64,000 nucleotides of DNA from Phaeosaccion multiseriatum (GCA_965112735.1 OZ218959.1:558001-622000), one strand, 5' to 3'. Shown: positions 3,140 to 57,628, counted from the stretch's first letter. The notes: generated by a model from the letters alone, not told the origin. Numbers and translations: made by a program.

Positions 3140-3643
3140 ACCAACTGCCCGCCCCTGGCTGCTGTGCACCGCCGCCACCACCACAGGCCAACACCAACGG
3201 CACCGCCTGCAGGGGTGGGAACGCGCCCGACCGTGCTTGTGGGGCAATATGAGACCTACACCACCTCATCATGCTCTGTCCCCGCCTGCTCAGCCATCCT
3301 CCGCAGCGTCGGCAGCGTCAAAGTCGTCCACACTGCACAAAGTGCGACAACTACGAGACGCCGCCGCAGCGCGAGCCATCTTGGCCTGCGCCCTCTATGT
3401 GTGGAAAGAATACTTCACCTCATCCGACAATAACATACCTCAAATGTTATTATCGGAAGAGGTGAAGTGTTCCTTCCACTCGTAGACAGCGCAGGCCAAG
3501 ATGGCTCGCGCTGCGGCGGCGTCGCGTAGTTGTCGCAAGCACGGTCGGGCGCGTTCCCACCCTCCAAGCGGCGCCGTTGGTTGGTGTTGGCCTGTGGTGG
3601 TGGCGGCGGTGTTGGGTACAGCAGCAAGGGGCGGGCAGTTGGT
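3140..3643. repeat. Imperfect fold-back inverted repeat (~500 bp) with a 7-nt loop at 3437-3443
   Basis: 3343-3436 pairs with 3444-3537 (CCGACAATAACAT-acctcaa-ATGTTATTATCGG). 3140-3239 pairs with ~3536-3643. About 100 bp extra in the left arm. Confidence 0.85.
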
Positions 3644-3809
3644 GTTGTTGCTTGTCGAGGAGCCTTGGTCTCCTCAGAGAGGGGCGAGGCGTTACTTTTA
3701 GACATCTCTCAACTCACCGGTTCCACACTCAACGCACAACCACGAATCCGAATATCCCCCCTCTCCTGTAAAAAAACAACTGTTACCACCAGTGTTTGGT
3801 GTTACGAAG

Positions 3810-3959: not shown

Positions 3960-4513
3960 TGATTATGGTTGTTGCGCCTTAGGTTCTAAAGTTCTTCTAC
4001 TTCAAATATCCTTCTACACTACCCATGACGAAGCAAAGCCGGCCAAGGATTGTAAGGGAGCGGCATGACGTGGTAGTCCAGCGAGTCTCGTTCGCGTCCC
4101 TTGACTTGATGTTTGGTTGTGGCTTTCCCCCCATCTCAGGGACTACTCCGCAACTTGGACGGGTCACACCTTCGAGAACTTTTGCTCGACGGGAACCTTC
4201 TAGACGGTCGGTGTTACGCGAACCCCGTTCGCATCCCTTTCACTTGATATGAGTATGACCAAATTTGTACCTCAGCTACAAGAAGTTCACTGGTGAGTGG
4301 TGGGGTTCGCGTCCCTTTCGCTTGATATGCGTATGACAAAGAACTTTCCCTCCGCTCCGCAGAGAGAGTTCCAGTGGAGCTTGGAAGTCTGGAGAAGCTT
4401 GAGCATTTGGACCTCTCTGAACACGCTCACTGGTAAGTGGTACGCACACCCGTTCGGGTGCGTCTCCTTGACTCGATATTGGTGTGGCTGAAGAACTCTC
4501 CTCCCATCCGCAG

Positions 4514-7500
4514 GGCGTATTCCACCAGAGCTTGGAAGTCTGGAGAAGCTTCAGGGTTTGGGCCTCTCCGGCAACAAGCTCACTGGTATGTGGTACGCGT
4601 ATCCGTTCGCGTCCACTTGACTTGATAGATATTAGTATGGCTGAAGAACTTTCCCCACGTCTCAGGGAGTACTACGCCGCAACTTGGACAGCTTTCAAAC
4701 CTTCGAGAACTGTGGCTCCACGTGAACAATCTAGAAGGTGGGGGGTACGGGAATGGCGTACATCTACCTTCCAGATTGTTATCGAGCCATAGTTGTCTAA
4801 GGTTTGAAAGCTTTCCAAGTTGCGGCACAATACTGCCTGGGGTGGGAGGGAAGCTCTTCAGCCATGCCAGTATCAAGTGAAAGAGACGCGAATGGGTGTG
4901 CGTACCACTCACCGGTGAGCTTATTGTTGTGGAGGCCCGAAGTCTCAAGCTTCTCCAGACTTCCAAGCTCTGGTGGAATACTCCCTGCGGATGGGAGGGA
5001 AGTTCTTGGGTCACACTGATATCAAGTGAAGGGGACGCGAACGGTTGTGGTACCACTCACCGGTGAGCTTGTTGTTGTGGAGGCCCGAAGTCTCAAGCTT
5101 CTCCAGACTTCCAAGCTCTGGTGGAATGCTCCCTGCTGATGGATGGGAGGAGAGTTCTTTGGTCACACCATTACCAAGCGAAAGGGCCGTTCCCGTCCCT
5201 TTCACTTGATATCAGTATGGCTGAAGACCTGTCCTCCCGTCCGCAGGGCGCATTCCACCAGAGCTTGGAAGTCTGGAGAAGCTTCAGGGTTTGGGCCTCT
5301 CCGGCAACAAGCTCACTGGTAGAAGTGGTACGCGTACCCGTTCGCGTCCACTTGACTTGATCGATACTAGTATGGCTGAAGAACTTTCCCCACGTCTCAG
5401 GGAGTATTACGCCGCAACTTGGACAGCTTTCAAGCCTTCGAGAACTGTGGCTCCACGTGAACAATCTAGAAGGTGGGTGGTACGCGAACGGCGTACCATC
5501 TACCTTCTAGATTGTTCTTATCGAGCCATAGTTGTCCAAGGTTTGAAAGCTGTCCAAGTTGCGGCACAATACTGCCTGGGGTGGGAGGGAAGTTCTTCAG
5601 CCATGCCAGTATCAAGTGAAAGAGACGCGAATGGGTGTGCGTACCACTCACCGGTGAGCTTATTGTTGTGGAGGCCCGAAGTCTCAAGCTTCTCCAGACT
5701 TCCAAGCTCTGGTGGAATACTCCCTGCTGATGGATGGGAGGAGAGTTCTTTGGTCACACCATTATCAAGCGAAAGGGCCGTTCCCGTCCCTTTCACTTGA
5801 TATGAGTATGGCTGAAGACCTGTCCTCCCGTCCGCAGGGCGCATTCCACCAGAGCTTGGAAGTCTGGAGAAGCTTCAGGGTTTGGGCCCCTCCGGCAACA
5901 AGCTCACTGGTAGAAGTGGTACGCGTACCCGTTCGCGTCCACTTGACTTGATAGATATTAGTATGGCTGAAGAACTTTCCCCACGTCTCAGGGAGTATTA
6001 CGCTGCAACTTGGACAGCTTTCAAACCTTCGAGAACTGTGGCTCCACGTGAACAATCTAGAAGATGGGTGGTGCGCGAACGGCGTACCATCTACCTTCTA
6101 GATTGTTCTTATCGAGCCATAGTTGTCTAAGGTTTGAAAGCTGTCCAAGTTGCGGCACAATACTGCCTGAGGTGGGAGGGAAGCTCTTCAGCCATGACAG
6201 TATCAAGTGTGAAAGAGACGCGAAGGGGTACGCGTACCACTCACCGGTGAGCTTATTGTTGTGGAGGCCCGAAGTCTCAAGCTTCTCCAGACTTCCAAGC
6301 TCTGGTGGAATGCTCCCTGCGGATGGATGGGAGGAGAGTTCTTTGGTCACACTGATATCAAGTGAAGGGGACGCGAACGGTTGTGGTACCACTCACCGGT
6401 GAGCTTGTTGTTGTGGAGGCCCGAAGTCTCAAGCTTCTCCAGACTTCCAAGCTCTGGTGGAATGCTCCCTGCTGATGGATGGGAGGAGAGTTCTTTGGTC
6501 ACACCATTATCAAGCGAAAGGGCCGTTCCCGTCCCTTTCACTTGATACGAGTATGGCTGAAGAACTGTCCTCCCATCCGCAGGGCGCATTCCACCAGAGC
6601 TTGGAAGTTTGGAGAAGCTTCAGGGTTTGGGCCCCTCCGGCAACAAGCTCACTGGTAGAAGTGGTACGCGTACCCGTTCGCGTCCACTTGACTTGATAGA
6701 TATTAGTATGGCTGAAGAACTCTCCCCACATCTCAGGGAGTATTACGCCGCAACTTGGACAGCTTTCAAACCTTCGAGAACTGTGGCTCCACTTGAACAA
6801 TCTAGAAGATGGGTGGTACGCGAACGGCGTACCATCTACCTTCTAGATTGTTCTTATCGAGCCATAGTTGTCCAAGGTTTGAAAGCTGTCCAAGTTGCGG
6901 CACAATACTGCCTGGGGTGGGAGGGAAGCTCTTCAGCCATGCCAGTATCAAGTGAAAGAGACGCGAATGGGTGTGCGTACCACTCACCGGTGAGCTTATT
7001 GTTGTGGAGGCCCGAAGTCTCAAGCTTCTCCAGACTTCCAAGCTCTGGTGGAATACTCCCTGCTGATGGATGGGAGGAGAGTTCTTTGGTCACACCATTA
7101 TCAAGCGAAAGGGCCGTTCCCGTCCCTTTCACTTGATATGAGTATGGCTGAAGACCTGTCCTCCCGTCCGCAGGGCGCATTCCACCAGAGCTTGGAAGTC
7201 TGGAGAAGCTTCAGGGTTTGGGCCCCTCCGGCAACAAGCTCACTGGTAGAAGTGGTACGCGTACCCGTTCGCGTCCACTTGACTTGATAGATATTAGTAT
7301 GGCTGAAGAACTTTCCCCACGTCTCAGGGAGTATTACGCTGCAACTTGGACAGCTTTCAAACCTTCGAGAACTGTGGCTCCACGTGAACAATCTAGAAGA
7401 TGGGTGGTGCGCGAACGGCGTACCATCTACCTTCTAGATTGTTCTTATCGAGCCATAGTTGTCTAAGGTTTGAAAGCTGTCCAAGTTGCGGCACAATACT

Positions 7501-10201
7501 GCCTGGGGTGGGAGGGAAGTTCTTCAGCCATGACAGTATCAAGTGTGAAAGAGACGCGAAGGGGTACGCGTACCACTTGCTTGCCCCTGAGCTGTTTCCT
7601 GTTCAGGCCGAGCACCATCAGGTTCTCAACACTTCCAAGCTCTGGTGGAATGCTCCCTGCGGATGGGAGGAGAGTTCTTTGGTCACACTGATATCAAGTG
7701 AAGGGGACGCGAACGGTTGTGGTACCACTCACCGGTGAGCTTGTTGTTGTGGAGGCCCGAAGTCTCAAGCTTCTCCAGACTTCCAAGCTCTGGTGGAATG
7801 CTCCCTGCTGATGGATGGGAGGAGAGTTCTTTGGTCACACCATTATCAAGCGAAAGGGCCGTTCCCGTCCCTTTCACTTGATATGAGTATGGCTGAAGAA
7901 CTGTCCTCCCATCCGCAGGGCGCATTCCACCAGAGCTTGGAAGTTTGGAGAAGCTTCAGGGTTTGGGCCTCTCCGGCAACAAGCTCACTGGTAGAAGTGG
8001 TACGCGTACCCGTTCGCGTCCACTTGACTTGATAGATATTAGTATGGCTACGAACTCTCCCCGCGTCTCAGGGAGTATTACGCCGCAACTTGGACAGCTT
8101 TCAAACCTTCGAGAATTGTGGCTCCACGTGAACAATCTAGAAGGTGGGTGGTACGCGAACGGCGTACCATCTACCTTCTAGATTGTTCTTATCGAGCCAT
8201 AGTTGTCTAAGGTTTGAAAGCTGTCCAAGTTGCGGCACAATACTGCCTGGGGTGGGAGGGAAGTTCTTCAGCCATGCCAGTATCAAGTGAAAGAGACGCG
8301 AATGGGTGTGCGTACCACTCACCGGTGAGCTTATTGTTGTGGAGGCCCGAAGTCTCAAGCTTCTCCAGACTTCCAAGCTCTGGTGGAATGCTCCCTGCGG
8401 ATGGGAGGGAAGTTCTTGGGTCACACTGATATCAAGTGAAGGGGACGCGAACGGTTGTGGTACCACTCACCGGTGAGCTTGTTGTTGTGGAGGCCCGAAG
8501 TCTCAAGCTTCTCCAGACTTCCAAGCTCTGGTGGAATGCTCCCTGCTGATGGATGGGAGGAGAGTTCTTTGGTCACACCATTATCAAGCGAAAGGGCCGT
8601 TCCCGTCCCTTTCACTTGATACGAGTATGGCTGAAGAACTGTCCTCCCATCCGCAGGGCGCATTCCACCAGAGCTTGGAAGTCTGGAGAAGCTTCAGGGT
8701 TTGGGCCCCTCCGGCAACAAGCTCACTGGTAGAAGTGGTACGCGTACCCGTTCGCGTCCACTTGACTTGATAGATATTAGTATGGCTGAAGAACTTTCCC
8801 CACGTCTCAGGGAGTATTACGCCGCAACTTGGACAGCTTTCAAACCTTCGAGAACTGTGGCTCCACGTGAACAATCTAGAAGGTGGGTGGTACGCGAACG
8901 GCGTACCATCTACCTTCTAGATTGTTCTTATCGAGCCATAGTTGTCTAAGGTTTGAAAGCTGTCCAAGTTGCGGCACAATACTGCCTGGGGTGGGAGGGA
9001 AGTTCTTCAGCCATGCCAGTATCAAGTGAAAGAGACGCGAATGGGTGTGCGTACCACTCACCGGTGAGCTTATTGTTGTGGAGGCCCGAAGTCTCAAGCT
9101 TCTCCAGACTTCCAAGCTCTGGTGGAATACTCCCTGCGGATGGGAGGAGAGTTCTTGGGTCACACTAATATCAAGTGAAGGGGACGCGAACGGTTGTGGT
9201 ACCACTCACCGATGAGCTTGTTGTTGTGGAGGCCCGAAGTCTCAAGCTTCTCCAGACTTCCAAGCTCTGGTGGAATGCTCCCTGCTGATGGATGGGAGGA
9301 GAGTTCTTTGGTCACACCATTATCAAGCGAAAGGGCCGTTCCCGTCCCTTTCACTTGATATGAGTATGGCTGAAGACCTGTCCTCCCGTCCGCAGGGCGC
9401 ATTCCACCAGAGCTTGGAAGTCTGGAGAAGCTTCAGGGTTTGGGCCTCTCCGGCAACAAGTTCACTGGTAGAAGTGGTACGCGTACCCGTTCGCGTCCAC
9501 TTGACTTGATAGATATTAGTATGGCTCCAACTTTCCCCACGTCTCAGGGAGTATTACGCCGCAACTTGGACAGCTTTCAAACCTTCGAGAACTGTGGCTC
9601 CACTTGAACAATCTAGAAGGTGGGTGGTACGCGAACGGCGTATCATCTACCTTCTAGATTGTTCTTATCGAGCCATAGTTGTCCAAGGTTTGAAAGCTGT
9701 CCAAGTTGCGGCACAATACTGCCTGAGGTGGGAGGGAAGCTCTTCAGCCATGCCAGTATGAAGTGAAAGAGATGCGAACGGGTACGCCACTTGCTTACTG
9801 AGCTGGTTCCTGTCCAGGCCGAGCACCATCAGGTTCTCAACACTTCCAAGCTCTGGTGGAATACTCCCTGCGGATGGGAGGAGAGTTCTTTGGTCACACT
9901 GATATCAAGTGAAGGGGACGCGAAAGGTTGTGGTACCACTCACAGGTGAGCTTGTTGTTGTGGAGGCCCGAAGTCTCAAGCTTCTCCAGACTTCCAAGCT
10001 CTGGTGGAATGCTCCCTGCTGATGGATGGGAGGAGAGTTCTTTGGTCACACCATTATCAAGCGAAAGGGCCGTTCCCGTCCCTTTCACTTGATATGAGTA
10101 TGGCTGAAGAACTGTCCTCCCGTCCGCAGGGCGCATTCCACCAGAGCTTGGAAGTCTGGAGAAGCTTCAGGGTTTGGGCCTCTCCGGCAACAAGCTCACT
10201 G
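4514..10201 (+). other. Plus-strand LRR exons. A (GRIPPELGSLEKLQGLGLSGNKLT): 4514-4585, 5247-5318, 5838-5909, 6583-6654, 7174-7245, 7919-7990, 8657-8728, 9396-9467, 10130-10201. B (GSITPQLGQLSNLRELWLHVNNLE): 4666-4737, 5401-5472, 5992-6063, 6737-6808, 7328-7399, 8072-8143, 8811-8882, 9548-9619
   Basis: 72-nt phase-1 exons with pyrimidine-rich CAG acceptors and GT donors. The donor is mutated to AT after B at 6064, 6809 and 7400. Frameshifted or remnant cassettes lie at 4140-4206, 4276-4292 and 4363-4432, and a truncated one at 10280-10320. Confidence 0.85.
4768..10015 (-). other. Minus-strand LRR exons. C (GSIVPQLGQLSNLRQLWLDKNNLE): 4768-4836, 5504-5575, 6095-6166, 6840-6911, 7431-7502, 8175-8246, 8914-8985, 9651-9722. 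D/E (GSIPPELGSLEKLETSGLHNNKLT): 4913-4984, 5061-5132, 5652-5723, 6245-6316, 6397-6468, 6988-7059, 7733-7804, 8323-8394, 8471-8542, 9062-9133, 9210-9281, 9944-10015. F (GSIPPELGSVENLMVLGLNRKQLR): 7585-7656, 9799-9867
   Basis: The reverse complement shows CAG|exon|GTGAGT (D/E), GTAGAT (C) and GCAAGC/GTAAGC (F). All are phase 1. Confidence 0.85.
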
Positions 10202-10770
10202 GTCGGAGTGGTACGCGTACCCGTTCGCGTCCCTTTCACTTGATATTTGTGTGACCAAGGAACTTTCCTCCGTCTACGGGGGGCATTCCACCAGAGCTTG
10301 GAAGTCTGGAGAAGCTTGAACAAAGGGCGGGTGACGGATGTGAAGGACCCTGGCCCCCTTCCTCACTCCTGAACCCGTATAGACCACTTGGGGGATAACT
10401 TGTTTAACACACACGGAACCTTCCTGGGTCTAAGGGTGGCATATCAGCATTGGTACCACTTCTCGCAACTCTCACCACCTTGACGGTTACAAAATACTTC
10501 GTAGTAGTTACGTACTTGAGCCAAAAAAAGGAGGGAGGGACTGGGGGGGGGGAATACCTCCAGGGGGGCGAGGCTTTCTACCCATGCACCCGCATGAGCA
10601 GGAGCAGGAGAACAGGGTCCGCGTGGTGGACATTTGGTGGATAGGCAGATAGATGGATGGATGACTTTGCTTTGTTTCATAGTCGATAGTAATCATTTTG
10701 AATCAAAGAATCGAATCGCTACATATGTGCGTCTTACTTCTTCTTCTTGCCCTTCTTGCTGAAGGTGCGT

Positions 10771-18986
<8,216 letters not shown>

Positions 18987-44400: not shown

Positions 44401-47400
44401 ATGGACCGAGTGAGGACGGCTCTGCGAAGGCTCAGCCCTTCTCTAGACGGCAGCAATCGCGGCAGCAGCAGCCGAAGCCATAGCCCTTCAGAGGGAGGAG
44501 ATGCAGACCAGGGACGTGGCCGTGGCCGCAAGAGGAGCTCCAGCAGAGGTAGAAGTAAGACGAGAGGGGGGAGCCGTGGACGTGGGAGGGGGAGTCGCAG
44601 TGGCAGTACCACGCATGACGCTAGATCAGGCGTAGTAGTAGTCAAGCCGATGGAGCGGCAGGAGGGCGGTGATGCTTCTCTCCGTTCGGAGATGCGCGAT
44701 TGGCTCGACGACTCGGACGACGGAGAAGCACCTGGGGGGAAGGAGGGTGACGAGAACAGAGTCCAGGACGAGGGGGGGCGGGAGTGGCTTGGCTGCTCCT
44801 CTCGTAACCCTTCCGTCCCTTCCTCTCTCACCTTGAAACAAGTCCAGGTAAAGACACCTGGGCCATGCACGCAGAGCAGAGCAGCGCAGGCTGCGAAAGT
44901 GGCGGTCAACAGTATACAGCAGAAGATGCAACAGGCGCTTCAAGAGCAGCAGCAGAACATGCAGTGGGACCTTCAGAGGCAGCAGCAGGAGCAGCAGCAG
45001 CAGGGAGTGGAGAAGGGGCTTCCTTCGACTCCTGAACCCCAGTCATCTCTTCAATCGACGTGTGCTGCTGATGATGCGGCGCCCTACTCGCCAGGCACGC
45101 AGAAAGAGATTGACGAGTGGCTCGAGATCGACTGTGGAGAGGACGAGGAGGGAGTGCAAGCGACGTCTCCCGCCTCTGCGGGTGTGATGGGCTTCTCACA
45201 GCTCTTACAGCAGCAGCAGCAGAAGCAGCAGCACCAGCAGGGGGCAGGGCTTGGGCAGAGTAAGTGTGGACCTCTTCTCGTCGCCATGCCTTCCTCCCTG
45301 CTAGCAATCAACACTGCAACCTCAGAGCAATCGCCGGCCGCTTGGGAGGAAGAGCGCCTCCCAGCCTACCCCTTGGGGCAGGGCAGCCGCACACACAGCA
45401 AAGAGTGCATCTCAGAGGAGCAGGTCGAAGCGAGGAGCTTCACACGCAAGCAGCACCGTCGAGGGAGCTACGGGAGTGGAGGGAGTAGAAGCTTGAAAAG
45501 AAGGAGTAGCGGGAGTTTCGGGCACAATCGAGTAGGCTCAGGGAGGAGGCACCAGCTCAGCGGCGACGCGCACTCGCCCATAGCAGCAGTAACCCTCGGC
45601 CTGGAAGGGCTCGGCTCTCCCGACCTCTCCACTGCCTCGAGCAAGAAGCAGCTCCGGCGCCGCCACTCTTCGGCTCATCATCTCCGCCCCAACATGAGTC
45701 GTGGCCACAGCTTGAGTCCCCTCACGCCGCTGGCCCCCGTCCGGCTGGAGGAGGAAGCGGGGCTGCTGCTACTGCCTTTCGAGCGCAGGACGAGTACATC
45801 TCAAAAGAGAAGTCCCGGTGCGATTGTCAGCGGCGGTGGAAGTGGCACCCCAGAAGTGCCCAAGGAGCGGTTATCTGAAGGAGAGGAGGAGGGGGAGGGG
45901 GAGGATGACGCTGATGCCGCTCCTGCTGCAGCGGGCGATTCTGGGAGCGGCAGCGGCAGCGGCAAGGTGTCGCAGATGCTCAAGTGGATGAGCATGGATA
46001 GCAGCGAGGACGACGAGGACTGGGCCGGCAATGCACCACCGGTAGCTTCTTCTGCGGCCCATGGTGCTTCGGATGTTGGCGTCAGAGGGAGGGACGCACC
46101 CTCCCCGGTGGGGCTTGGCGTGGCGTCCTCGGGCTCCGACAGCGGAGCCAACGCCAATACCACTGCCACTACGAATGCCACTGTCACTGCCACTGCCAAT
46201 GCCCATGCTGGCTCAGGGTCACCTCCAGGTGCGTCGGATGGAGTCGGGTGGAGCGGGGGGAGGGGGAGGGTCCCGAGAGGCGCTCTGCTCACTCACTGCT
46301 CTCCTCCGCAGGTGGCGCTTGCAGTGCTTCTCGCCCGTGCTGCCTCGTTTTCCATCCTCTGCCCCCTGCCGTCCCGTCCCTTCCCTGCCTTACCCTATCC
46401 CCTCCCCTCCCCTTCCCTCCTCCTTCCCTCCCTCCCCTATTTCCGTGAACATTACGAACTTGCTTTTGCAGTGTGTGCTTCCCCCCGCAGCAAGGTGTTC
46501 GCCCACGGAAGGTCTCGCTCCCCCCCCCTCAAGTACAACCCCCCACTCAGCGCCAGCCTGGGCACGGACATATCGACTCGGAGCCTCTCCAAGCGACGCA
46601 CGCCCTCACGCTCGCCCTCCCCGGGGGGTGGCCACACGCACGAGGGCACTTCAGAGGCTATGGAGGGCAGTGTCAATACGGGCCAGAGGGGGAGGGAAGC
46701 CTCGTCTTTACCTTCGGAGGGGGTTGGTAGCGGAAACGGGTCAAACGGGTCTCACTCGCCACCCAATGCAAGCCCAAGAAACAGCATCCGGCGCGTGGGG
46801 GGAAAGGCTCCCCGACCGGTGAGAAGACGAGAGAAGAGAGGAGGGCACACAGAGGTGCTGATTGCACAGCCTCCTCACCACCGTTCTTCCCCTCCTCTCC
46901 TCCAACTTGCTCCCTCCATCCACTGCCATCGCTTCCTTCAGAGCTCCGCCCTGGGCGGGACAGGTCAGTCCTCTTCGTCCTACGGCAGCTACAGCGCCGA
47001 GCAGCTCGGAGCGGGTGGAGGGGACCAGCAGCCGGACTTTCCGACGGCGGACTTCGACGACGGTTACAGCACCAACGACGACATGATGAGCAGTAAGTAC
47101 AGCAACTGGGACATTCATGAGTGTGGAGGGGAGGGGAGGGAAGGGGAGGGGAGGGGAGAAGGGGAGGGGAGGGGAGGGGAGGGGATGGGAGGGGAAGGAA
47201 GGGGAGAAGGGGAGGGGAGGGTTGGGGAGGGGAGAAAGGGGGGGGGGGGGGGGAGGGGAGGGGAAGGAAGGGGAAAATGGGAGGGGAGGGGAGTGGAGGG
47301 GAGGGGATGGGAGGGGAAGGAAGGGGAGAAGGGGAGAAGGGGAGGGGAGAAGATGACCCTCGTATCCTTTACCTTCAATGCCGTGCCATGGGTCTTCCCA

Positions 47401-48263
47401 TCGACTAATCCATCAAAGAGATGTTGGTCCGTTTTTTGCTTTGCCTTGCCCCCACTCATCCCGTATGGCCAATAATTGCCTTGCCTTGCCTCCCCTCCCC
47501 TCCCCTCCCCTCCGCTCAGGCCAAGAAAGCTCCGTCAGCATGGACGGTGGACTGCATGACTTCCTGGCCACAGGCAATGAGGAGTGGGGAGATGATGAGT
47601 CACAGGACACAGAGGGGAAGCTCAGGCTCGAACTCGGGCCTGTGAGGGAGGAGGAGGGCTCGGAGGGGGACTTTGACGACTTTGACGAGGAGGGGGGCAG
47701 CGACAGAGGTGGGTGATACATGAAGGTACACGCATGTACACACATGGGTACAGACATACACACACCATACACACACACATACACACACGCACACACACAC
47801 ACACACCACACACATACATACACACACACACACACACACACGCACACGGCGCGAGGACTTCCCCTCCCCGTGGGCCGCTTTGCCTTCTCGTATACCATGA
47901 ACTGACTCACAGACCTCCTCCTGCTGCCGCTGTATCACCAACTGCTGCTGGTGCTCTGGGGTGCGGCTTGTGCTTGTGCTGGTTCTCCTGTCCGATGGTT
48001 ACAGAAGACGAGGCGTCAAAGGGGAGGGAGACAAGACGCTTCCTCAGCGCCAACCGAGTCGTGCACAACGTGTTGCTCGGAGTGGAGGGACTCGAGCTCA
48101 GCACACTCACCCTGGAGAGGTGCGTGGGGGCGGGCGTGCAAACGCTGCGTGCAGACGGCGGATGAGGGAGGACCTGTAGGAATGTAGGGATTAGGAGGAG
48201 GAGGAGGAGGAGGAGGAGGAGGAGGAGGAGGAGGAGCGCTCGCAGAATTGATTCTTGTCTTGT

Positions 48264-48294
<31 letters not shown>

Positions 48295-48827
48295 CCTGCC
48301 TCAATCCCTCGCTCATTCTCTCCCTCTTTCCCTCTCCCTCTCTCTCATGTCACACTGCCTCTTACTCCCTCGCCCTCTCTCCCTCCCTCTCCTTCCTATC
48401 TATCCCTCCCCCCCTCTCCCTCTCCTAGCCAAGCCGCGGTCATGCGAACAACCCGTATGCTTGAGTACAACCCCGGTGAAGTGATCTGCCGCGAAGGTGA
48501 GGAGTCCCTGGCCTTCTTCATCATCATGGGCCCTGCCGAAGCCGAGGCGGTGGTGACTCAGAGAGACCGACACGGCAGTGGCCAAGCAGAAACTCAGGCC
48601 CCAGCCCAGACGCAAGCAACAGCAGCAGCACCCCCAGCGCAAGGCCAGGGCAGCGCCGATCGCACCTGCAAAGCGTCGGAGTCTGCGCACAGCTCTCCAA
48701 CGGCGGCCGCGGAGCAGCCGTTACAGAAGGCTTCAGCACTTGGGTCTGGGCTTGGCGCGAGCCTTGCCCCTCCGTCGACGTCTTTGCTCGGGGAAGAGGG
48801 AGGGGGAGGGCGGGCTCCCTCCACCCC

Positions 48828-48869
<42 letters not shown>

Positions 48870-51800
48870 CGAGGAGGACGAGGAGGACGAGGAGGAGCAT
48901 GGCACAGAGGTGGTCAAGCTTCAGGACGAGGAGGACGAGGAGGAGCATGGCACAGAGGTGGTCAAGCTTCAGGACGAGGAGGAGCATGGCACAGAGGTGG
49001 TCAAGCTTCACAAGGGGGCATACTTTGGGGAGTGCGGACTCGTGTACTCCCCGCAGAGGAGGCGCAGGGAGAGCGTGAGGGCGCTGACCACGCTGCAGTG
49101 CTTGTGCATAGGGCATGAGCACTTCGGACTATGGCAGCAGATGCGTTCTTACATGATCATGCAGAAGGTAGGGGTGGCGTTGTTGTTGTTGTTTTTGGTG
49201 GTGGTGGTGATGGTGGTGGTGGTGTTGTTCTGGTCGGTATTGGTGTTGTTGTTGCTGTTGTCAAGGCCCGGCAAGAAGAGGTGTCCCCGACGCTCACACC
49301 AGTGCCGTTCCATGTCCCCTCCTCTCCCCTCCCTTCTCTCCCCCTCCCCTCCCCTCTCCCCCTCTCCTCTCCCCTCCCTTCTCTCCCCCTCCCCTCCCCT
49401 CTCCCCCTCTCCTCTCCCCTCCCTTCTCTCCCCCTCCCCTCCCCTCTCCCCCTCTCCTCCCCCTCCTCTCCTCTCCCCCTCCCCCCCCCAGGTCCCCTTC
49501 CTGGCCCAGCTGCCCAAGGCGGTACAGATCTCTGTGCAGCACAAGATGCGCATCGTGGACTTTGAGGATGGGGAGCTCATCGTCAGGCAGGGGGACGCAG
49601 GGGACAAGTTCTACATGATCACCAAGGTAAGCAGGATAGAGGTATATGCGCAGGGTAGACGAGTATGGGCATGGCATGCTATCGTATGGAACTTGACGAT
49701 CAGAAGGCGTTTCAGAAGGCGTTTCAGAAGGCAGGAGAGGCGTAGAGGTGTAAGGGAGAGAGAGAGAGATGTTGACTCTCCCTTCCCGCCATGTTTGTGC
49801 GCCCTGCGCTCCTGTCGCAATGCCGCTCTCTCTCTCTCTCCCACTCTCTGTCTCTCTCTCTCTCTCACTCCCTCTCTCTCCCACTCTCTGTCTGTCTTTC
49901 TCTCTCACTCCCTCTCTCTCCCACTCTCTGTCTGTCTCTCTCTCACTCCCTCCTTTCCTCTCTCCCTGTTTCTCTCTCTCTTCTGGCTCTCTCTCCCTCC
50001 TCCTCTCTCTCTCTTTGTGTGTGTACATATTCTTTATAAATATATATATATACATATGTATTGTATATATATATATGTGTGTGTGTAAACGCCGAGCGCA
50101 GGGGGCGTGCGAGATTACACAGAACGTGGTGCTTCCCGGAGGAGGAGGAGGAAGAGACGCCCTCGGCTGGGGAGAAGGGGGGGAGGAGGTGGACAGATGG
50201 ACAGACGACAAGTACCCCGGGGGGGAAGAGGTGCTGACCCACAAGTACGAAGGGCACTACTTCGGAGAGATGGCGCTTGTATATGATGAGCCGAGAAACG
50301 CCAATGTCAGGGCACTGGGAGCGGTGTCGTGCATCTATCTGGATAAGAGTGAATTCCGACCGCTGCTTACGGATAGGAAGTTCTATCACATGATCGAGCA
50401 AAGGTGAGGGGAGGAGGGAGGAGGGAGGGGGGGGAGGGGGAGGGGAAGGAGGGAGGGCAGGGAGGAGGGAAGGAAGGGGGAAGGAGGAGGGGGGCACTGG
50501 CCTGGCGCAAACCTTCCTTCCTCACGCCACACATTCTTTCTTTACCCACACCAACACCATACCAACACTCAAACAACAGTATTCATAGCATCGTCCTCAA
50601 GAGAGAGAAGCGCGCGAAGCTTCTCTCCCAGAAGCTACCGGGGCAGCAGCAGACAAGGTTCTCCACCCCGGGGGGAGCTCGCCAATCACTTGGAGCAGGG
50701 GACGGCTTGAGCGACGGGGACAGCGGGCACGAAGGGATGGGGCGACGCGAGCGGTACAGTACAGGGGGGGCGGGCGACGGGAGCCCGTCTGTGCGCATGG
50801 GCGTAGGGGGAAGCTTCGCTACCGCTACCTCCACCCCGGGGCATCCGGCCTCGTCGAGGAAGCTCATGAACAAGCGCAAAAGCTTTCGAACCGTTGTCAA
50901 GGCCGTCGAGTCAAGGCTGCCCACGGGCAGCAAGATTATCAACAAGTACGAGGTGGTGAAGGAGATTGGCAAGGGCGCCTTCGGGATTGTGTATCTGTGT
51001 AAGGACACGTCCACCTCCTCCCCAAGCGCGCATGGTGGGGAGGGAGATCGGGGAGCGCTGTATGCGATGAAGGTCATCGAGCGCAAGAGGCAGCGGAAGA
51101 GCATCGGGATCGGGGGAGGGGGGGGGGGGGGGACGGAGGTGGAGGGGCAGGCAAGTGGGACAGCAGGGGTGGCAGCACGCGACAGGAGCAGCTCCTGGCC
51201 TCCCTTCAGAGGGAAGTTGGGGTGATGAAGCAGATCAGACACCCCAATATTGTGACGCTGTGGGAGGTGATTGATGACCCGAGGGCTATTGGGGTGTACC
51301 TTATTCAGGAGTATATGGACGCGGGGCCCATCTTGCCGGAAGGGTACGAGGTGGACCCTCTAGGCGACGAGGAGGCTTTGTTCGTGTTCAAGCAAGCGGT
51401 GTGTGGTCTGCACTACTTGCATGAGCACGGGGTTGTGCATGGAGATATTAAGCCTGCCAACTTGCTGCGCAACAGCGACGGAGTTGTCAAGATTGCGGAC
51501 TTTGGAGCCGCCAGCATGCTCTTCTCGGAGGGGGACAGCAGCAGCAGCAGCACCGGCACCAGCAGCGAGAGAGAGGGCGGGGGCGGGAGTGGGGGTGGGG
51601 GTGGGGGCAGCATCAACAGCAGCGGTGGGGGCATCAGCGGCAGCTTTAGAGCGCCCAAGAAGCTCATTGTGGGCACCCCTGCCTTTATGGCACCCGAGCT
51701 CTTCGCCCCCGATGCGCTGCAAATGATCAGCACCGCAGCCGATGTGTGGGCCCTCGGGGTGTCTCTCTTCCAGGTAAGTTACGTAGGGTTACATACGTAG

Positions 51801-54800: not shown

Positions 54801-57628
54801 CGGACAGGGCGTATCCTCTCGACCGGGCTCACGCTCTTGCCCCTTTTGGAGTCAAAGCGTCGCCGGCGCTCGCTTGGCAAGGTATCGGCGGAGAGGGTGG
54901 AAGAGGAGAAGCAGGGGCGGGTGGACGAAAAGGAGGAGGGGGTGGTGGTGGTGGTGGTGGTGGTGGAGGAGGAGGAGGAGGAGGAGGAGGAGGAGGAGGA
55001 GGAGGAGGAGGAGGAGGAGGAGGAGGAGGAGGAGGAGGAGAGGGTGGCGGGGAAGGGGTAGGAGAGAGAGAAGGAGAAGGGGGGGGAGGAGGAGAAGGGG
55101 GAGAAGGGGGAGGAGGAGGAGGAGGAGGAGGAGGAGGAGGAGGAGAAGGAGGAGGAGGAGGAGGAGGAGGAGGAGGAGGAGGAGGAGGAGGAGGAGGAGG
55201 AGGAGGAGGAGGAGGAGGAGGAGGAGGAGGAGGAGGAGCAGGAGGAGCAGGAGGAGCAGGAGGAGGAGAAGGAGGAGGAGGAAGAGCAACAGCAGAGAAG
55301 AGCGACAAGGAGAAGGAGCAACGATTGTTGCAGGACAACATGCAGAGCATTTTGGAGGGCGCCTTCGAATCCGAAGACGGCGGCAGCAGCGGGGACGACA
55401 ATTCAACGGAGGGCGACCTGCTTTCGCCTACATTCGGTGTCGGGGAGGAGGGGGAGGAGAAGCAGCAGGAGGACCAGAAGGAGGAGGAGGAGGAGGAGGA
55501 AGAGGAGGAGGAGGAGGAGGAGGAGGAGGAGGAAGAGGAGGAGGAGGAGGAGGAGGAAGAGGAGGAGGAGGAGGAGCAGCAGCAGCAGCAGCAGGAGGAG
55601 GAGAAGGAGGAGGAGGACCAGGAGGAGGAGGACCAGGAGGCGGCGGAGGAGGCGGAAGAGGAGGACTGGCTCGGAGAAGGAAGCAGCAGCTGCACAACGG
55701 TGCTGCCAGGATTTGACAAAGAAGATGCCCAGAGGCAGCAGATGCGCCTGGCCCTGGATGACTTTACTGATAGCGAACAAGAAGACGGCGACGAGGAGGC
55801 GGAAGAGGAGGAGGAGGGGGAGGAGGAGGAGGAGGAGGAGGAGGAGGAGGAGGAGGAGGAGGAGGAGGAGGACGACGACGACGAGGAGGACTCCTCGTGC
55901 TCCTCGGACGACGACTATGGCGATCTCAATGACGTGGAGGACGTTACGGAAAAGGTGGAGGAGGCGCTGCCCTCCATGCTCGAAGGGGCGGTGGCTGCCG
56001 ACGATCCGGAGTTGCAAGGCCTCTCGCCAGCGGAGGAGGAGACCTACTGGCGAGCCTGTCGCGACGCGCAGCAGAGCAGCCAAGCGCAGCACTGCCCTGG
56101 CAAGGGAGGGGAGGCAAAGGGCGTGAGGCTAGAGCTCCCCCACATGCGGCAGCAACAACAGCAGCAGGAGGGATGGGAGCAGCAGCAGCAGGAGGAAGAG
56201 GAGGAGGAGGAGGAGGAGGAGGAGGAGGAGGAGGAGGAGGAGGAGGAGGAGGAGGAGGAGGAGGAGGAGGAGGAGGAGGAGGAGGACGACGACGAGGACG
56301 AGGACGAGGACGAGGAGGAGCAGGAGCAGCTCGACAGGCGACAGCTGACATCCGTGGTGCAGGTGCGCAACTTCGCTTCGCAAGTGAATCTGGAGCTGGG
56401 CATTCGACACGGCCACAACTCCGTGCAGGGCAACAGGGCAACCATGGAGGACCGAGTCACCGCCATCGGAGACCTGCTGGCCAGGCCTCTGTGGGAGGAC
56501 CACTTGCTAGCCCAGGAGGAGACCCAGGGGGGCGGCAGTGGCGACACCATTGTGTTTGAGGGCCCCTCGGGGGGCTTCTTCCCGCCCTCGCCTGGAGGCT
56601 GCGGCGAGTCGGACCTGTCGGAGGGGGAGGAGGTGAGTGACAGCAGCGTTCTCTTTTCCCCGGAGAGTATAGAGGATGGTCTGGCGGCGCATCGAGAGCT
56701 CGCGAGCGTGGCGTTCTTCGGTGTGTATGACGGGCATGGGGGCTCGAGAGCCGCTGAGATGCTGCAGGATTCGCTCCACACCGCCTTGCTGCAGCAGCCG
56801 AGCCTTCACACGGACCTTCCCCAGGCTATAAGGGGGGCCTGCCTCGAGGCGGATGAGAGCATCCTTCGTAGAGACAGTGAGGCGCAGGAGGAGAGCAAGC
56901 GCAGGAGGGAGAAGGACTGCGGGGCGAAGGAGGCGAAGGAAGCGAAGGAAGCGAAGGAGGCATCTGCGGTGGCACCCGGGGACAGCTGTCCTCTCAAGCC
57001 CATGGCCTCCTCAGGGGCCACTGCGGTGCTGTGCGTGGCCTACGCGGCGAGGCAGGGCCCAAGGGAGGGTCGGGTGCGTCTGTGCGTGGGCAATGTCGGG
57101 GACTGCAGAGCCGTCCTCAGCCGCAGAGGGGTCGCCACCGACCTGAGCGAGGATCACAAGCCCTCGTTGCAGAAGGAGGCGGATAGGGTCGAGCGGGCGG
57201 GCGGCTTCCTCAGCAGGGGCCGCGTGGACGGTGTGCTGGGCGTCACCCGATCGTTCGGAGACATCAGGCTTAAGACCTTCACCTCACCCCCGCCCGGGCC
57301 ATTGACTGCCATCTTCGAGGAGGAGATGTGGGGGCAAGCCGTCATATCCAGGCCGGACGTGGTGACGCTTGAAGTGTCTCCCGGGGACGAGTTCCTTCTG
57401 CTGGCCTGCGACGGCGTGTGGGACGTGGTGAGCAGCCAGCAGGCCGTGAACTTTGTTAGGCGGAGGCTGCTGCAGCACAGGGACGTTCAGAGAGCGGCGA
57501 GAGAGCTGAGTGCTAAGGCCGTGGAGCTGCTGTCCAGCGACAACTGCAGCTGCATAATAGTGTGCCTCAATCAGCAGGAGGTTCGAGGAGGCTTCGTCAG
57601 CCCCGTCAATGTCGCCAGCGGCTTTTGA
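44401..57628 (+). CDS. Very large multi-exon protein: disordered N-terminus, two cNMP-binding domains, CaMKK-like Ser/Thr kinase, low-complexity linker, PP2C phosphatase
   Basis: cNMP: GEVICREGE...GAYFGE and GELIVRQGDAGDKFYMI...GHYFGEMALVYDEPRNANVRA. Kinase: INKYEVVKEIGKGAFGIV, YAMK, HGDIKPANLL, DFG, GTPAFMAPE. PP2C: GNRATMEDR, FFGVYDGHGG, NVGDCRAVL, DHKP, LGVTRSFGD, LACDGVWD, SSDN. Confidence 0.8.

Follow-up and report, generated by a model that had tools for sequence, protein, structure and literature searches.

Since 2012, candidate immune receptors of brown algae have been known to contain intact leucine-rich repeat (LRR) exons that lie on the wrong strand, and a diversity based on recombination has been proposed for these genes, with no mechanism or site reported (PMC3341825, PMC11378527). 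Work of Zambounis et al. (2012, PMC3341825) on the ROCO and other LRR loci of Ectocarpus described 72-nt exons that encode one LRR each, and also LRR exons that lie on the non-coding strand, intact and with conserved splice sites. Loci made of LRRs only are viewed as a reservoir in brown algae (PMC3341825, PMC11378527). A second body of work concerns rearrangements at short inverted repeats: inversions that stem from replication errors are recognised by their head-to-head plus tail-to-tail joints at short interrupted inverted repeats, and in yeast joints with loops of 2-4 bases are unstable and lose hairpin sequence (PMC4689423). How does an LRR exon come to lie on the opposite strand, and where exactly does the strand change? 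Palindromes have no mention in PMC3341825 or PMC11378527 (the latter in Frontiers in Plant Science 2024), strand-switch joints are unmapped in both, and a literature search on the combination of LRR exon arrays, strand switches and palindromes returned nothing relevant. Here we describe a stretch of 64,000 nt from Phaeosaccion multiseriatum (GCA_965112735.1 OZ218959.1:558001-622000), referred to as the window, in whose coordinates all positions are given. It holds at 4063-10351 an array of single-LRR exon cassettes on both strands, each made of a 72-nt exon and a 76-82-nt intron. The strand changes 16 times within eight tandem units, always inside one short imperfect palindrome of the introns; the joints go back to one rearrangement, which was probably mediated passively by the palindrome itself.

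The likeness to the brown-algal arrays is close. Here too the exons measure 72 nt and encode one 24-residue plant-type LRR each (GxxPxxLxxxxxLxxLxLxxNxLx), the introns are phase 2, the exons of the opposite strand are intact, have splice sites and are confined to the LRR region (the intron motif spans 4227-10244), and differences between copies are concentrated at the variable positions of LxxLxLxxN. Unlike those loci, the present array lacks a ROC-COR or other adjoining domain, its introns are very short (76-82 nt) and near-identical, and its reverse exons are not scattered but regular, forming an eightfold tandem quasi-palindrome. No start exon or effector domain (ROC-COR or other) adjoining the array was found in the flanking sequence. 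The array consists of orphan one-LRR-per-exon cassettes in a eukaryotic protist and is probably non-coding or pseudogenic.

The LRR exon cores that could be placed number 41, of which 22 lie on the minus strand and 19 on the plus strand. Between 4514 and 10201 the exons are 72 nt long and open in the LRR frame (the exception being exon C of unit 1, with 69 nt), and almost all of them, on both strands, are flanked by AG and GT. With phase-2 introns, the LRR frame takes one base from the preceding exon and gives two to the following one, a symmetry that lets each exon be joined to every other. There are two types of exon, a-type repeats being GRIPPELGSLEKLQGLGLSGNKLTG and b-type repeats GSITPQLGQLSNLRELWLHVNNLEG, and the translations read GxIPPELGSLEKLxxLxLxxNKLTG or GSIxPQLGQLSNLxxLWLxxNNLEG. 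From left to right, a degenerate plus-strand edge (exons at 4140, 4276 and 4363) leads into the eight units and these into a plus-strand right edge. Each unit has the order +A +B >< -C (-D) -E <>, with a convergent joint between B and C and a divergent one after E. The outer flanks are both on the plus strand, with A0, A and B on the left and A and Ax on the right.

Strand-switch joints in an intronic palindrome

An ordinary intron of the array, 76-82 nt long, reads GTGAGTGGT ACGCG[A/T]AC CC GTTCGCGT CCCTTTCACTTGAT ... CAG. A preliminary description of this DNA had drawn attention to a conserved palindrome in these introns, and the examples it quoted are present as described: ACGCGAAC-ccc-GTTCGCAT at 4216-4234, ACGCGTAC-cc-GTTCGCGT at 5330-5347 and ACGCACAC-cc-ATTCGCGT in minus-strand introns. 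With up to three mismatches allowed, GTTCGCGTCCCTTTCACTTGAT occurs 31 times in the window, always within 4227-10244, where shuffled sequences would be expected to give 0. The right half (TTCGC.T) and the CTT...GAT that follows it are invariant across 12 intron lineages. The left half drifts across the same lineages (ACGCGAAC, ACGCGTAC, ACGCGTAT, ACGCACAC, AC-CACAA, or deleted) without compensating changes, a perfect ACGCGAAC-N(1-4)-GTTCGCGT occurs nowhere in the window, so that each copy is imperfect, and the palindrome is essentially lost in two intron classes. The best palindrome of the window is the one at 4216-4234, with 7/8 pairs, in the plus-strand intron 4207-4275 of the b-to-a class. 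A second palindrome, GGTACGCGTACC, is perfect over 12 nt and overlaps the motif in the A-to-B introns; in a typical one (5319-5400, plus strand) it lies at 5327-5338, across the start of the imperfect ACGCGTAC cc GTTCGCGT at 5330-5347. A metagenome scan with TTCGCGTCYMYTTSACTTGAT gave 3 matches, none of them in an LRR cassette context, which were taken as chance.

The convergent joints are donor-donor fusions and the divergent joints acceptor-acceptor fusions, and the proposal that both kinds are half-introns fused within the palindrome is borne out. There are eight convergent gaps of 31 nt (GTGGGTGGTACGCGAACGGCGTACCATCTAC), near-identical to one another except for the first, which has 30 nt and is the most diverged (GTGGGGGGTACGGGAATGGCGTACATCTAC, 4738-4767). 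The second, at 5473-5503, reads GTGGGTGGT ACGCGAAC G GCGT ACCATCTAC and is the one quoted in the preliminary description; the others lie at 6064-6094, 6809-6839, 7400-7430, 8144-8174, 8883-8913 and 9620-9650. The eight divergent gaps are near-identical, measure 114 nt and have the centre ..ATCAAGCGAAAGGG CC GTTCCCGT CCCTTTCACTTGAT.. In the first of them (5133-5246) the centre CC GTTCCCGT occupies 5187-5196, between ..CAAGCGAAAGGG and CCCTTTCACTTGAT, within the stretch 5173-5210 to which the preliminary description had pointed. The remaining gaps, each with its centre in brackets, are 5724-5837 (5778-5787), 6469-6582 (6523-6532), 7060-7173 (7114-7123), 7805-7918 (7859-7868), 8543-8656 (8597-8606), 9282-9395 (9336-9345) and 10016-10129 (10070-10079). 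When aligned to the intron consensus, the convergent gap contains positions 1-17 of a plus-strand intron and 1-12 of a minus-strand intron, with 5 central palindrome bases missing. What remains in the divergent gap is positions 18-78 on its plus side and 28-78 on its minus side, without the 8-nt left arm. All four broken ends thus fall at intron positions 12-28, inside the palindrome motif, of a cassette period of 150 nt. The intron at 4207-4275 is the only undisturbed b-to-a intron, and it fits the junction halves, with ACGCGAAC on the donor side and CCCTTTCACTTGATATGAGTATG on the acceptor side.

Contigs of public sequencing runs bridge both types of joint, one of them from a second sample, which shows that the joints are real DNA. 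The first convergent joint is crossed by contig X5, from the other sample (4558-4873), and the second by X4 (5410-5578) and X1 (5429-5508). The second divergent gap is crossed by X6 (5731-5869) and X4 (5774-5860), and the third by X4 (6519-6605). None of the runs with matching contigs could be recognised as RNA, and the contigs include the introns.

Do the 16 joints record one event or many? The units are 93-99% identical to one another, and the plus arm (A-intron-B) is only ~80-85% identical to the reverse complement of the minus arm (C-intron-E). The 16 joints therefore represent one rearrangement, with two joints, that is older than the amplification; the warning given with the preliminary description, that the near-identical junctions may descend from one amplified event, proved to be right. 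The identity of 80-85% holds over ~100-290 nt; around both centres the similarity of the arms reaches ~290 nt in each direction, and each 591-nt unit is accordingly a quasi-palindrome. Since the array begins and ends with plus-strand cassettes, the divergent joint too predates the amplification, and for the same reason it was rejected as a mere seam of tandem duplication. The claim of a reciprocal inversion at a symmetric site, with a few nucleotides lost at each joint, agrees with the geometry and with the 5 and 8 nt that are missing, and has to be narrowed to one old, imprecise event that was later amplified.

Origin of the strand switches

What would place both exchange points in the same few nucleotides? 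The reading that we favour, and hold to be probable, is passive: an inversion (or inverted duplication) mediated by the palindrome, by microhomology or by hairpins, with small deletions at the centres and subsequent unequal crossing-over. We rank it above coincidence and above a programmed system. The order of events and the molecular mechanism that we infer are the following. A single germline rearrangement would have struck an array in which a- and b-type cassettes ran in direct, plus-strand orientation; either the segment that is now C-(D)-E was inverted or a neighbouring A-B segment was duplicated in inverted orientation. Both exchange points would lie 10-27 nt from the start of two homologous b-to-a introns, inside the short quasi-palindrome. 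[quoted passage not shown] The fresh joints would have been the centres of long palindromes with a loop of 2-3 nt and, being unstable, may have lost 5 nt at the convergent and 8 nt at the divergent joint. Unequal crossing-over between the A cassettes that flank the inverted block would then have brought the A-B><C-(D)-E<> unit to eight copies, and exchange between D and E exons would have given the short units without D. The 'cruciform-induced break-and-rejoin' that the preliminary description had offered as an alternative comes close to this.

Homologous exchange in an array of direct repeats yields deletions and duplications, not inversions. The palindrome alone gives one direct repeat homology to the opposite strand of another, so an inversion guided by microhomology, a template switch or a hairpin-provoked break would be expected to fall in the intronic palindrome without any dedicated enzyme. 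Two introns of the left edge, both on the plus strand, support this proposal. In the intron at 4293-4362 a deletion has taken away the palindrome's left arm and loop (GTGAGTGGT-GGG-GTTCGCGT), and in the A0-to-A intron at 4433-4513 a 4-nt insertion has rewritten the right arm, now GGGTGCGT, to match the variant left arm of the same intron (ACGCAC..). This is what hairpin-templated mutation would do to the motif, and it hints that hairpins form in DNA and drive mutation at the palindrome. Homology-driven exchange is visibly active in the array, as identical exon cores of 28-30 nt occur in both orientations and units exist both with and without D; the D and E exons are near-identical, with 3 differences in 72. 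An ancestral, regular a-a-b super-repeat was also considered, which is attractive and unproven, as D may be a later copy of E.

The hairpins themselves were looked at as possible functional elements. DNA hairpins of 4-6 bp are predicted at the palindrome site in most intron classes and none in the E-to-D class. For the convergent joint taken together with the adjoining exon ends, the predicted fold is a 27-bp hairpin with a 5-nt loop (z -10.6); for the divergent centre it has 15 bp (z -4.5). In a covariation test 75% of the pair cells were paired, a value reached by 62 of 500 shuffles, with one double change only. A selected RNA or DNA hairpin was rejected, given that covariation does not rise above the shuffles and that the folds of whole introns are unremarkable. 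The idea that the introns are transposons of the introner type was rejected as well, as the intron ends are not inverted repeats.

Among described rearrangements, those at short inverted repeats (ODIRA triplications, fold-back and U-turn; PMC4689423) are similar in several respects. They too combine a head-to-head and a tail-to-tail joint, each at an existing short interrupted inverted repeat (here the 8-2-8 motif of the ordinary introns), and place a central inverted copy between direct copies (here +A +B >< -C (-D) -E <> +A). Their small-loop joints are likewise unstable and lose hairpin bases, and the losses of 5 and 8 nt at the present joints fit those reported from yeast (PMC4689423). In contrast to ODIRA, the present segment of ~0.3-0.45 kb is far too small to need or hold the required replication origin. 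It also departs from the whole group in that the arms are 80-85% identical, which leaves a duplicative origin unproven, in that one and the same intronic motif makes up both repeats, and in that the inverted repeat and its loop are not preserved (5 and 8 nt missing), which weakens strict membership and not the mechanism.

Several points weigh against the passive reading or limit its reach. The hairpin of the present-day introns is weak (5-6 bp), with whole-intron z values from -2.2 to +0.7, and what the ancestral b-to-a introns looked like can only be inferred. In a contig with a paralogous sequence the motif reads ATGCGAAC-cc-GTTCGCAT. Both of its arms are changed relative to the consensus (a double change) and the palindrome is perfect; although a single anecdote, this hints that it may be maintained. 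Differences between the arms cluster at the variable codons of the LRR, exon positions 39-58, with none at 11-33 or 11-38 depending on the pair; as they lie mostly at variable codons, selection or conversion has reshaped the arms and their age is uncertain. The identity of 80-85% and the clustered differences would fit an old duplicate and an inversion of a different cassette pair alike, and inversion of an existing cassette block cannot be told from inverted duplication. As there is a single event, the breakpoints may have come to lie in the palindrome by chance: an enrichment of breaks at the motif is then beyond statistical testing, and our own rough estimate for two random breaks landing there is 1-5%.

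Coincidence is accordingly the rival that survives best, and we regard it as unlikely while taking it seriously. It would have been an ordinary inversion with two breaks, closed by end joining at positions that were similar in two introns by chance, with the palindrome uninvolved. There is one event only, bases were lost at the joints with no clear templated microhomology, and the palindrome is imperfect everywhere and under no detectable constraint. If the array is under selection, exons stay intact only after breaks from intron to intron, which lifts the prior up to roughly 5%. What speaks for the passive reading instead is that all four ends are confined to 16 nt of a 150-nt period, a stretch that is also the only inverted homology available; moreover, both partners belong to the intron class with the best palindrome, and the same stretch was deleted or rewritten in other introns.

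Could the palindrome be the site of a programmed system? In that case a recombinase or nuclease, encoded at another place in the genome, would recognise it as a cis-acting site, invert and shuffle LRR cassettes (possibly somatically) and so diversify receptors, much as a shufflon, V(D)J joining or the variable lymphocyte receptors (VLR) do, with the array as fossil or donor reservoir. The reciprocal geometry of the joints at a symmetric site, the intact exons with splice sites on both strands and the paralogue with its compensated perfect palindrome would all suit it. So would the abundance of the cassettes: in three runs the array has a word depth 10-90x that of the unique flank, and the contigs that match the stretch at a likeness of at least 95% number 385-728, which means that the cassette family, including the intron motif, is highly repeated genome-wide. 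Invertible segments of the Hin/Gin, Rci shufflon and FLP/Cre kind are similarly bounded by a short symmetric site and found in either orientation, as here in an array of repeat-protein genes. Their sites are regenerated at the joints, and here the 5 central nucleotides and the 8-nt left arm are gone, no recombinase was found nearby, no orientation polymorphism was seen in the contigs, and the context is one of spliced exons in a eukaryote. Lamprey VLR assembly and inversional V(D)J joining share with the array the LRR cassettes in both orientations and an imprecise joint that recalls a coding joint; they differ from it in that the present locus has no incomplete germline receptor gene, its cassettes are complete spliceable exons and it bears no sign of somatic change. 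Joining of the RAG or transposase type differs further, as both joints are imprecise with no precise signal joint and no flanking heptamer-spacer-nonamer.

Other observations run the same way. Part of the site was lost at both joints, so that the exchange was neither conservative nor left a precise signal joint; the window contains no perfect site, changes in the left arm go uncompensated, and the palindrome is missing from two intron classes. Through all eight units the orientation pattern has stayed the same for the 26 ordinary introns that carry the motif. No other strand-changing joints were seen among the public-run contigs, which drop rare variants, and the second sample carries the same convergent joint. 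For comparable brown-algal loci, somatic recombinants and a recombinase are likewise unreported (PMC11378527). Pfam scans of the 20 large open reading frames (ORFs) across the 64 kb found no recombinase or transposase, in agreement with the preliminary description, within a search that covered the window only and may miss spliced genes. The site-specific recombinase or nuclease that the same description had put forward first is hard to reconcile with imprecise joints, an imperfect palindrome without covariation, weak hairpins and a single orientation pattern, and we consider a programmed system quite improbable.

Slightly less credible still is a mobile cassette, in which the 150-nt unit from centre to centre would be a tiny element with 8-bp terminal inverted repeats (GTTCGCGT...ACGCGAAC), cut and reinserted in either direction by a transposase. 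Measured in this way each cassette is indeed bounded by inverted 8-mers spaced by CC or CCC, and the joints have the geometry of flipped elements. The inverted block, however, comprises two to three cassettes and not one, target-site duplications are not visible, the ends are eroded at both joints, the strict periodicity of 72-nt exons and phase 2 is what tandem duplication would give, and the window's large ORFs yielded no transposase. An assembly artefact, with the alternating orientation arising from mis-assembled repeats or chimeric fold-back reads, hardly needs to be entertained: the region is a long repeat, and no single one of the listed contigs covers the entire stretch, yet both types of joint are crossed by independent short-read contigs, one from another sample, and fold-back chimeras would have arms that are 100% identical, against 80-85% here.

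Units, edges and surroundings of the array

The left edge begins on the plus strand with a degenerate b-type LRR exon of 67 nt and broken frame, read directly (4140-4206). After the b-to-a intron come an a-type exon remnant of 17 nt (4276-4292) and, beyond the intron without left arm, exon A0 with 70 nt and again a broken frame (4363-4432). Unit 1 (4514-5246) comprises +A 4514-4585, +B 4666-4737, -C 4768-4836 (69 nt), -D 4913-4984 and -E 5061-5132. Unit 2 (5247-5837), with 591 nt, has no D and is quasi-palindromic in its entirety; its exons are +A 5247-5318, +B 5401-5472, -C 5504-5575 and -E 5652-5723. The remaining units carry +A, +B, -C, -D and -E at 5838-6582 (unit 3), 7919-8656 (unit 6) and 8657-9395 (unit 7), +A, +B, -C and -E without D at 6583-7173 (unit 4), and +A, +B, -C, -D* and -E at 7174-7918 (unit 5) and 9396-10129 (unit 8). 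The right edge (10130-10351, plus strand) consists of an A exon at 10130-10201, an intron at 10202-10279 that has lost its AG acceptor, and an a-type exon at 10280, with LRR similarity gone after ~10320.

Three of the eight plus-strand B exons, at 5992-6063, 6737-6808 and 7328-7399 (units 3, 4 and 5), have an AT in place of the GT donor, and the donors of C are GT in 8/8. The minus-strand reading, E-D-C with the inverted A-B skipped as a 371-nt intron, is thus better preserved than the plus-strand one. The variant cassette D* (GSIPPELGSVENLMVLGLNRKQLRG, minus strand) stands in place of D at 7585-7656 in unit 5 and at 9796-9867 in unit 8, and has a non-GT donor (GC in unit 5). It matches D over the first 26 nt and then again from intron position 4 onward, and to judge from the sequence it looks like a conversion patch from a paralogous cassette whose ends lie in conserved sequence.

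Inverted repeats with arms of 102-123 nt, 80-83% complementary and with a 5-nt loop, are found at 5363-5613 and in six equivalent places. If transcribed, they would give long hairpin RNAs. An Rfam search of the array returned only matches to miRNA precursors far below threshold, which merely reflect these long inverted repeats. A read-through ORF on the minus strand (6057-6392) matched one bacterial LRR protein only in a word-indexed protein search, and large LRR proteins at 35-48% identity in an exhaustive one. Ten of the latter were looked up and belong to metagenome-assembly clusters with a single or few members; the only named one is bacterial. Neither protein search turned up proteins of the present genome itself. 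In three runs of one sample, the summed word depth of the bin 4223-4313, which covers the intron motif and the 17-nt exon remnant, is ~85x that of the unique flank, so that few short sequences of the cassette family seem to be repeated more often genome-wide than the intron motif.

To the left of the array, a minus-strand ORF (2325-2963) has a weak, sub-threshold match to the rve integrase core (E 0.064), and beside it, just upstream of the array, lies an inverted repeat of ~170 nt (3180-3370 versus 3480-3650). Together they are probably a decayed retroelement or transposon. To the right, a multi-exon AAA ATPase gene (10730-13400, minus strand) ends with its 3' end ~400 nt from the edge of the array; it was identified from its Walker A (..SGAGKTMM..) and Walker B (..IIYIDE..) motifs, and simple repeats of GGAGG and of the CA type abound in its introns. 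Many long tracts of simple sequence, namely (GACC)n, (CCCT)n, (AGGG)53, (GA)115, (GGAGG)n and (AGG)241, occur at 13270-16950, 47100-50000 and 54900-56300, with (AGG)241 inside a 1337-residue ORF that has a PP2C domain at its end. The Pfam domains found in the 20 large ORFs are an RFWD3-type WD40, a cNMP-binding domain, a kinase, PP2C, a bromodomain (BET), SNF2 and ATG9.

Implications for LRR exon shuffling

The locus offers a proposal that can be checked: the palindrome of the cassette introns is the sole inverted homology between direct repeats and hence a natural place for the strand to switch. If the event is unique genome-wide, the locus is a neat inversion sited at a palindrome and then amplified in tandem. 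If many independent joints sit at the motif across the genome, the palindrome would explain how LRR exons are shuffled onto both strands, and whether the process is programmed would become a test of joint precision, orientation polymorphism and enzyme dependence.

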